Notes under the pieces: model-generated
What the model was told of the DNA's origin: nothing
What the model saw: only the letters and a program-made list of their open reading frames with translations
Databases searched by the model: none
Shown here: one piece after another, positions 42,436 through 43,191 of the stretch
Layout of the letters: every line of letters starts with the position of its first letter
Numbering within the stretch: the stretch's first letter is position 1
DNA from: Macrostomum hystrix
Lineage: Eukaryota > Animalia > Platyhelminthes
DNA: 64,000 nt
Reading direction: 5' to 3'
Assembly: GCA_950097015.1 (NCBI GenBank)
Contig: CATNEN010000041.1
Span: forward strand, 2,108,001-2,172,000
Program-made: the position numbers and the translations under genes

Positions 42436-42585
42436 AAAATTTATAAGTATATATACTCAAAACTTTTGTATTCAAACATCAACTACTTTCCTAAAAATGT
42501 TGTCAAATTCATCTGAAATTCAAATATAAATATATGACTGTCACCGTCACTGTCATCAATTTCTAATATACTTATTTCAGAAATT

Positions 42586-42744
42586 GTGGCAGAGCCAGTA
42601 GCGGCGATTTGGATGGTGGCAGGGGAGGCTACAACTGCAGTGATAGAGGCTGATGGCGTGGCCAGGCTGATGCCGAGAGTTAGGAAGACAAATGGCTGGT
42701 GTGTGTAGCCCGTAGTTACAGCAGTACTCTAGCTGTAGCAGCTA
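42586..42744 (-). pseudogene. Decayed copy of ~155 bp of the RING-RRM exon (38551..38703)
   Basis: Aligns to the source with mostly C->T and G->A changes; flanked by a 32-bp perfect inverted repeat (42459..42490 and 42760..42791). Confidence 0.85.
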
Positions 42745-43191
42745 GTCCTACTATGTTAAGAAAGTAGTTGATGTTTGAATACAAAAGTTTTCAATTATTT
42801 TGTGATGAAATTACAATGAAAAGGAGGCTTTAGAATTTGTCAACAGAGAGCATAAGTGTACTATAGCCATTTACCTAGTGGTTTAAGTATATTTGCAGTA
42901 GTTATGGACATTATAACTCTATATTAAAATGTAATTAAAATTTAGTAATAAAACAAAGTGTCCAGAAAGAAAATTAGGGCAAATGATGATATTGCAAATT
43001 AACATATATTTAATTTAGAATTAGGAAAATAAACACCAACACAAACATATAGATTGTGTTGCCCATGAATTTTGTCAAACTGACATCTTCAGGGCAAACT
43101 GAATATAGGGAGCACAACAACCAGTATATTTAACAGAAAAAAAAATTTACAGTCCACAGTCAGTTCAGTTTGTTCCAAACAGGGTTCCAAT

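Follow-up and report, generated by a model that had tools for sequence, protein, structure and literature searches.

Our data suggest that a small internal piece of the exon of an RRM gene was duplicated into a nearby copy of an old dispersed repeat, called R here, by a local rearrangement, and that the duplicate then lost most of its CpGs through germline 5-methylcytosine (5mC) deamination acting together with a GC-to-AT bias. We give this reading as a whole, i.e. a local rearrangement followed by ordinary methylation-type CpG loss, a probability of about 0.65. The window analysed is a stretch of 64,000 nucleotides, and all positions below refer to it unless a contig or locus is named.

The source gene is represented by a single long open reading frame or exon on the reverse strand (38120-40141), which encodes 673 aa with a C-terminal RRM_1 domain and has a GC content of 63-68% and a CpG observed/expected ratio (o/e) of 0.91-0.95. 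The source segment, 38551-38702 in forward-strand positions, lies wholly within this exon, contains 18 CpGs and encodes a low-complexity stretch rich in Pro, Ala, Ser and Thr. By local alignment it matches 42586-42743 on the same strand over 150 positions, 130 of them identical (86.7%), with three indels in the copy relative to the source (+6, -2 and +2). A BLAST search within the window places the firm core of the match at 42601-42743 against 38560-38702 (E = 1e-32). When the copy was searched against the whole 220-Mb genome, the source was the sole other match (E = 6e-36).

The substitutions in the copy are nearly all in one direction. From source to copy there are 20 of them, namely 10 G>A, 7 C>T, 1 G>T, 1 T>A and 1 G>C, so that 17 of 20 are C>T or G>A and none goes from A/T to G/C. 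Four of the 18 source CpGs in the aligned part are retained and 14 are lost: five now read CpA, four TpG and three TpA; a further one was shifted (CCGG to CCCG, through the G>C change), and a 2-bp insertion interrupts the remaining one. The changes outside CpGs are TG>TA at 38590, GG>GA at 38572 and a GT>TA pair at 38667-8. The copy, with a GC content of 56% and five CpGs, has a CpG o/e of 0.45 versus 1.15 for the source segment. The initial annotation had described a copy of the gene's own exon, altered almost only by C->T and G->A, with no A/T->G/C change and next to a source exon that keeps its CpGs, and the formal alignment and spectrum bear this description out apart from small differences in counts. 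It had given the CpG loss as 11-12 of 17 with three going to TpA; the three TpA cases are confirmed and the counts become 14 of 18. It had also listed two non-CpG TG->TA changes, of which only the one at 38590 is clean.

The differences lie mainly on the copy. We took the polarity of the changes from their codon positions. Read in the source frame, the 20 differences comprise 12 non-synonymous (one of them a stop) versus 8 synonymous ones, they are evenly spread over codon positions 1, 2 and 3 (7, 5 and 8), and the indels of the copy break the reading frame. Changes in a constrained source would not give such an even pattern. The non-synonymous differences, the even codon positions and the frame-breaking indels together point to neutral decay of the copy, and support the view that it is a decayed duplicate of an exon of the neighbouring gene. 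A few of the third-position differences may belong to the source lineage.

The decay is strongly directed at CpG sites. By class of source site, 16 of 36 CpG positions changed (44%), against 3 of 68 other G/C positions (4.4%) and 1 of 46 A/T positions (2.2%). The copy sits in an AT-rich, CpG-poor domain (40700-44200), which after removal of the copy and of a neighbouring miniature transposon (M1, described below) contains only 11 CpGs in 2.7 kb, with a CpG o/e of 0.146 and a GpC o/e of 1.17. CpG o/e is graded, from 0.146 in the domain through the two younger inserts, at 0.45 (exon copy) and 0.50 (M1), to 1.15 in the source. Within the domain, TpG+CpA has an o/e above 1 and TpA one of about 0.9-1.0. 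A second CpG desert runs from 45.4 to 47.85 kb. CpG is also depleted in the adjoining intron 1 of dlg. Other parts of the window that are equally AT-rich, at 22-25, 28-29 and 32-33 kb, have a CpG o/e of about 0.9-1.1, and the depletion is therefore regional and CpG-specific rather than the result of a general drift towards AT.

We also observed that the AT-rich non-coding DNA of the window falls into two kinds with sharp boundaries between them, one with a CpG o/e of about 1 (22000-25000, 28000-29000 and 32000-33000) and one nearly void of CpG (o/e 0.1-0.2) with GpC raised (1000-3000, 41000-44000 and 45400-47850).

These observations bear on the strongest of the alternatives, plain AT-biased neutral drift without DNA methylation, under which the CpG loss would be a by-product of GC-to-AT pressure. 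Such pressure clearly exists in this genome: non-CpG G/C transitions among M1 copies amount to 1-3% versus 1% for A/T sites, and the non-coding DNA has a GC content of 30-35%. But drift of this kind does not account for CpG sites changing about 10 times faster than other G/C sites, for the lack of any GpC depletion, or for the AT-rich segments at 22-25, 28-29 and 32-33 kb having a CpG o/e of about 1; nor does it account for M1 copies of equal non-CpG divergence differing up to 10-fold in CpG loss. We hence consider drift alone unlikely. The pattern resembles the 5mC-deamination decay known from vertebrate CpG depletion and from mosaic invertebrate methylation, with which it shares the roughly 10-fold faster CpG transitions, the symmetry of TpG and CpA, the sparing of GpC, the regional depletion, and a genome that encodes DNMT1, DNMT3 and MBD proteins. 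Its placement would run counter to classic invertebrate gene-body methylation, in that depletion affects a non-exonic domain (upstream or intronic) next to a CpG-normal exon.

M1 provides an independent control on the decay. It is a 649-bp MITE with long terminal inverted repeats (TIRs) at 41787-42435, flanked by an exact 9-bp target site duplication (TSD), AAAATTTAT, at 41778-41786 and 42436-42444. It lies about 20 bases to the left of the structure that holds the exon copy and is unrelated to it. A genome search gave 346 candidate matches to this high-copy family, and the 40 copies that were scored show about 90% identity. In 19 of 24 other copies examined there is a 9-bp TSD (one mismatch at most). 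The TIRs contain 34-bp internal repeats and the consensus is CpG-rich, with 30 CpGs (loci L041-L069). We aligned 30 copies and polarised their changes against the consensus and, since subfamily markers exist, then against subfamily consensuses. Transitions per site in the 30 copies are 17.4% at CpG, 2.8% at CpA, 1.75% at CpT, 1.0% at CpC and 1.0% at A/T. CpG hypermutability is real and widespread in this genome. TG or CA arose independently in different copies at each CpG, which indicates that the decay came after insertion. The copy next to the exon fragment has lost two-thirds of its CpGs.

M1 copies differ widely in how far their CpGs have decayed. The CpG load per copy varies from 2% to 35% (heterogeneity chi-square 141, df 29, p = 1e-16) and is unrelated to non-CpG divergence (rho -0.25), which suggests germline methylation that is specific to individual copies. 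We considered the CpG o/e of the flanking sequence as a predictor of this loss and dropped it, as the correlation is weak (rho -0.12 to -0.36). Given the 2-35% spread and its weak tracking of the flanks, the decay may act on elements and not on domains. An apparent CpC/CHG excess in the CpG-decayed copies (OR 5.8) was traced to subfamily-diagnostic sites and vanished when the subfamily consensuses were used. Within a CACGG/CCGTG motif of the M1 alignment, the ACG cytosine changed about twice as often as the CCG cytosine.

The genome encodes the enzymes expected for CpG methylation. Three C5-methyltransferase loci were found in the assembly. The candidate DNMT1 (C2:2150957-2160021) has a DNMT1-RFD domain (E = 4e-25) upstream of a methylase domain (E = 6e-18) with a DNMT1-type catalytic motif; its RFD match contains one in-frame TGA, which is probably an intron. 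The second is a fragment of a candidate DNMT3 (C11:3925561-3925812), whose best match is DNMT3A/B (E = 4e-20), and the third is a candidate DNMT2 (C39:20070480-20070950, E = 1.5e-26). Three MBD loci were identified in the genome, one of them at C7:2750540-2750716, and a search of the genome for an APOBEC_N-type deaminase gave no match. According to reviews (PMC11292947, PMC9246332, PMC10658182), DNMT1 and DNMT3 are both kept in Macrostomum lignano, where 5mC occurs at a low level, and the methylation patterns of free-living flatworms are described as unknown. The initial annotation had asked for such an inventory of methyltransferases and deaminases and had called RIP or non-CpG methylation unexpected in an animal of this kind, a judgement that is not supported in view of the DNMT1, DNMT2 and DNMT3 genes found here and of the M. 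lignano reports.

The same annotation had further suggested that the changes recall fungal RIP or non-CpG methylation. In RIP, C>T changes occur preferentially at CpA, producing an excess of TpA and a depletion of CpA and TpG, and both copies of a duplicate are mutated. The corresponding explanation here is a RIP-like or non-CpG (CpA/CWG) methylation-driven hypermutation set off by the duplication. It draws on the three CpG -> TpA double hits (all of them CGG -> TAG) and one TpG -> TpA change, so that CpA/TpG sites would have been hit about 4 times where about 1.2 hits are expected (nominal p ~0.03). The one-directional C>T/G>A change on duplicated sequence is indeed shared with RIP and MIP in fungi. 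The context differs, being CpG here and not CpA: only 1 of 19 CpA sites changed in the exon copy (5%) versus 44% of CpG positions, CpG being changed about 10 times as often as any other C in the copy, and in the 30 M1 copies the rates are 2.8% for CpA versus 17.4% for CpG. CpA loss does not follow CpG loss either (2.7% in CpG-decayed versus 3.1% in CpG-intact M1 copies), and the over-representation of TpG+CpA but not TpA in the CpG desert is the reverse of a RIP footprint. Only a single copy of the exon segment changed, although RIP hits both copies; the source is untouched at its synonymous CpGs, with all 18 CpGs present and an o/e of 1.15. The duplicate is only about 155 bp long, and the multicopy MITE M1 has the same CpG-only pattern. 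The three C5-methylase loci are accounted for by DNMT1, DNMT2 and DNMT3, with no RID-like enzyme in addition. The annotation had tied its idea to a genome-wide excess of CpA change; none is seen in the 30 M1 copies, and with this the RIP or non-CpG idea falls. We reject RIP and regard any related hypermutation set off by duplication as less probable still than drift.

The three double hits to TpA are left as a weak unexplained residue. Under a two-step model calibrated on M1, with a CpA rate of about 0.07-0.15 of the CpG rate, 0.4-0.9 such hits would be expected in the exon copy against the 3 observed (nominal p ~0.01-0.07, post hoc). In CpG-decayed M1 copies, TpA double hits occur at 8 of 489 CpGs versus about 4 expected, with 3 of the 8 at unreliable alignment edges, and these hits are not enriched at CGG/CCG. 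Every double hit in the exon copy has a synonymous third-position site as one of its two changes, and this one may have arisen in the source lineage, where it could be an AT-to-GC change. A small non-CpG component in CAG context could also lie behind the three CGG -> TAG double hits; as an explanation of them we set this aside, given the lack of CGG/CCG enrichment among the M1 TpA sites.

How the exon fragment arrived can be read from the sequence around it. It is carried as cargo (42586-42743, from 38551-38702) between two inverted arms, 42459-42494 and 42756-42791, which are 36 nt long and complementary at 35 of 36 positions, 32 nt of them perfectly. There is no TSD around the arms, as the 9 bases outside each of them do not match. 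Both the 32-bp perfect inverted repeat and the lack of a TSD had been reported in the initial annotation, where Pack-TIR capture and a templated repair insertion were offered as possible origins. A whole-genome search did not find a second copy of the 333-bp arm-to-arm structure. Exact and degenerate searches with the arm gave five occurrences in the genome at no more than 3 mismatches, two at this locus and three elsewhere; none of the three other sites has an inverted partner, so that the pairing occurs only at 42459-42791.

The three other arm sites all lie within R, which has at least 10 copies of 66-82% identity and whose homology runs through the arm region on both sides. At this locus, R is present in two pieces. 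One contains the left arm and lies on the forward strand (42455-42516), corresponding to R positions 344-404 of L005:1150-1700 (82% over 62 nt, E = 2e-11). The other begins with the right arm and lies on the reverse strand (42756-43015), corresponding to positions 383 down to 67 of the same reference (E = 2e-10 and 4e-7). The left arm therefore extends inward into R and the right arm outward. Joined, the two pieces account for a single R copy, of which only positions 344-383 are present twice, in inverted orientation (an overlap of 36-40 nt), and the similarity between the pieces ends abruptly at both arm ends. The arms are 97% alike, versus about 66-82% among R copies, and share derived bases relative to the other R copies, from which we conclude that the arm duplication is local and younger than R. 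Since the arm stretch is internal to R elsewhere in the genome, the structure points to a local rearrangement or templated insertion rather than to Pack-TIR capture. We also considered whether R itself could be a long-TIR or foldback element and discarded this, because the other R copies are collinear and have no inverted partners. Elsewhere, two tandem R copies about 570 bp apart, with a palindromic MITE-like insert nested between them, were observed in locus L011 (C38:1129346-1132376; around C38:1130846-1131446).

The Pack-TIR explanation holds that a non-autonomous TIR transposon, similar to a Pack-MULE, took up the exon fragment and then moved to its present position. The likeness is real, as a gene fragment is framed by 36-nt inverted repeats and the genome has active Mutator-like MITEs with 9-bp TSDs, one of them 20 bp away. 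The arms do not behave as element termini, however: they are internal to R and never paired elsewhere, and R homology passes the right arm outward and the left arm inward. The structure is unique in the genome, lacks a TSD, and shows no family or sign of mobility; it has none of the properties of M1, neither its TIR family nor its TSD nor its copy number. We consider capture very unlikely, and the alternative origin named in the initial annotation, a templated repair insertion, fits. Equally improbable is that two independent R insertions came to lie head-to-head with the exon fragment between them and arms made alike by gene conversion or chance, as a dispersed family could allow, given that the arms are 97% identical versus 66-82% among R copies, that the similarity stops sharply at both arm ends, and that the pieces add up to a single R copy in which the arm alone is doubled.

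We propose the following course of events for the local rearrangement. An internal fragment of about 155 bp from the RRM gene exon would have been duplicated at the DNA level and placed in AT-rich non-coding DNA at a distance of 4 kb, in the course of a small complex rearrangement within a pre-existing copy of R, and no transposase would have been involved. Two routes could lead to the observed structure. In the first, replication or repair would have switched template several times within one event (MMBIR/FoSTeS-like). In the second, the exon fragment would have been inserted next to R, followed by a micro-inversion of about 300 bp with staggered breaks. Either route would leave two opposed pieces of one R copy overlapping by 36-40 nt, i.e. 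the observed inverted repeat. Template switching of the FoSTeS/MMBIR type makes complex local rearrangements, and staggered breaks give micro-inversions with inverted duplications, as at Drosophila inversion breakpoints. The locus resembles these systems in that a short segment was copied over a distance of a few kb, the junction carries an inverted duplication of the sequence next to it, filler is present, a TSD is absent, and the event is unique. The templated segments are both from nearby, the exon piece in direct orientation from 4 kb off and the inverted 36-40 nt from the adjoining R.

The locus differs from these systems in having no significant microhomology at the junctions and a patch of 69 nt for which no template is seen here. 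This AT-rich patch (42517-42585) separates the left R piece from the exon copy, and 12 nt of filler with no template found (42744-42755) separate the exon copy from the right arm. A MAFFT alignment suggests that R continues across 42517-42585, with a possible GTGG/TGG overlap at the junction 42586-42589; we did not retain this, as the local scores are not above those of shuffled sequences (z < 2, not significant). A third templated patch, 42581-42595 inverted relative to 42428-42442 at the junction of the M1 end and its TSD (14 of 15 nt), was likewise dropped, not being above shuffles over 13 kb.

After the rearrangement, the fragment would have found itself in the CpG-depleted domain and evolved neutrally. 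The loss of about 78% of its CpGs, with TpG and CpA about equal and at about 10 times the rate of other cytosines, would be the footprint of germline 5mC deamination atop the general GC-to-AT bias, and the source exon, under selection and outside the desert, would have kept its CpGs.

The exon copy lies 2.4 kb upstream of the first ATG of the source reading frame (40141, reverse strand), and the coding exon of dlg that carries the L27 domain begins at about 47845 (forward strand). This places the copy either between the two divergent genes or within an intron of a 5' UTR. Past the CpG-poor domain there is a CpG cluster at about 44.5-45.4 kb, which is probably the dlg promoter. An Rfam scan of 41.5-43.5 kb showed nothing relevant. 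Another inverted-repeat pair, 43622-43779 and 44237-44388, was observed within the CpG-poor domain, with 86% identity over about 160 nt and 460 bp between its arms, and probably represents a further TIR element. Several long tandem-repeat arrays follow on the downstream side of dlg exon 2 (49600-51100, 52800-54550, 57670-58080, 59560-60140, 60460-61000 and 62480-64000), some of them with extreme strand skew, and 50-51 kb is without any CpG.

By itself the locus is a small neutral rearrangement, and thus a local marker and not a new mutation system. An animal RIP-like system is a tempting but wrong reading of it, which our analysis removes. The locus also illustrates that a gene fragment can be framed by short perfect inverted repeats that are not the ends of a transposon, while M1 shows what a true TIR element looks like in this genome. 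Its interest is rather that of a natural experiment, in which a sequence rich in CpG, whose starting state is known, came to lie in a CpG desert, and it gives a local estimate of about 10:1 for CpG versus non-CpG decay. The best use of the locus would be as a dated reporter alongside a methylome. Together with the M1 control, in which copies of equal age have CpG loads of 2-35%, the exon copy lends support to a germline methylation that is specific to regions or elements in a Macrostomum flatworm. We tentatively speculate that the exon fragment and M1 could serve as datable reporters of a germline methylation confined to sharply bounded non-exonic domains and particular transposon copies, with CpG-rich exons spared. 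If true, this pattern would be one not yet described for any flatworm, and it would differ from the canonical gene-body methylation of invertebrates.
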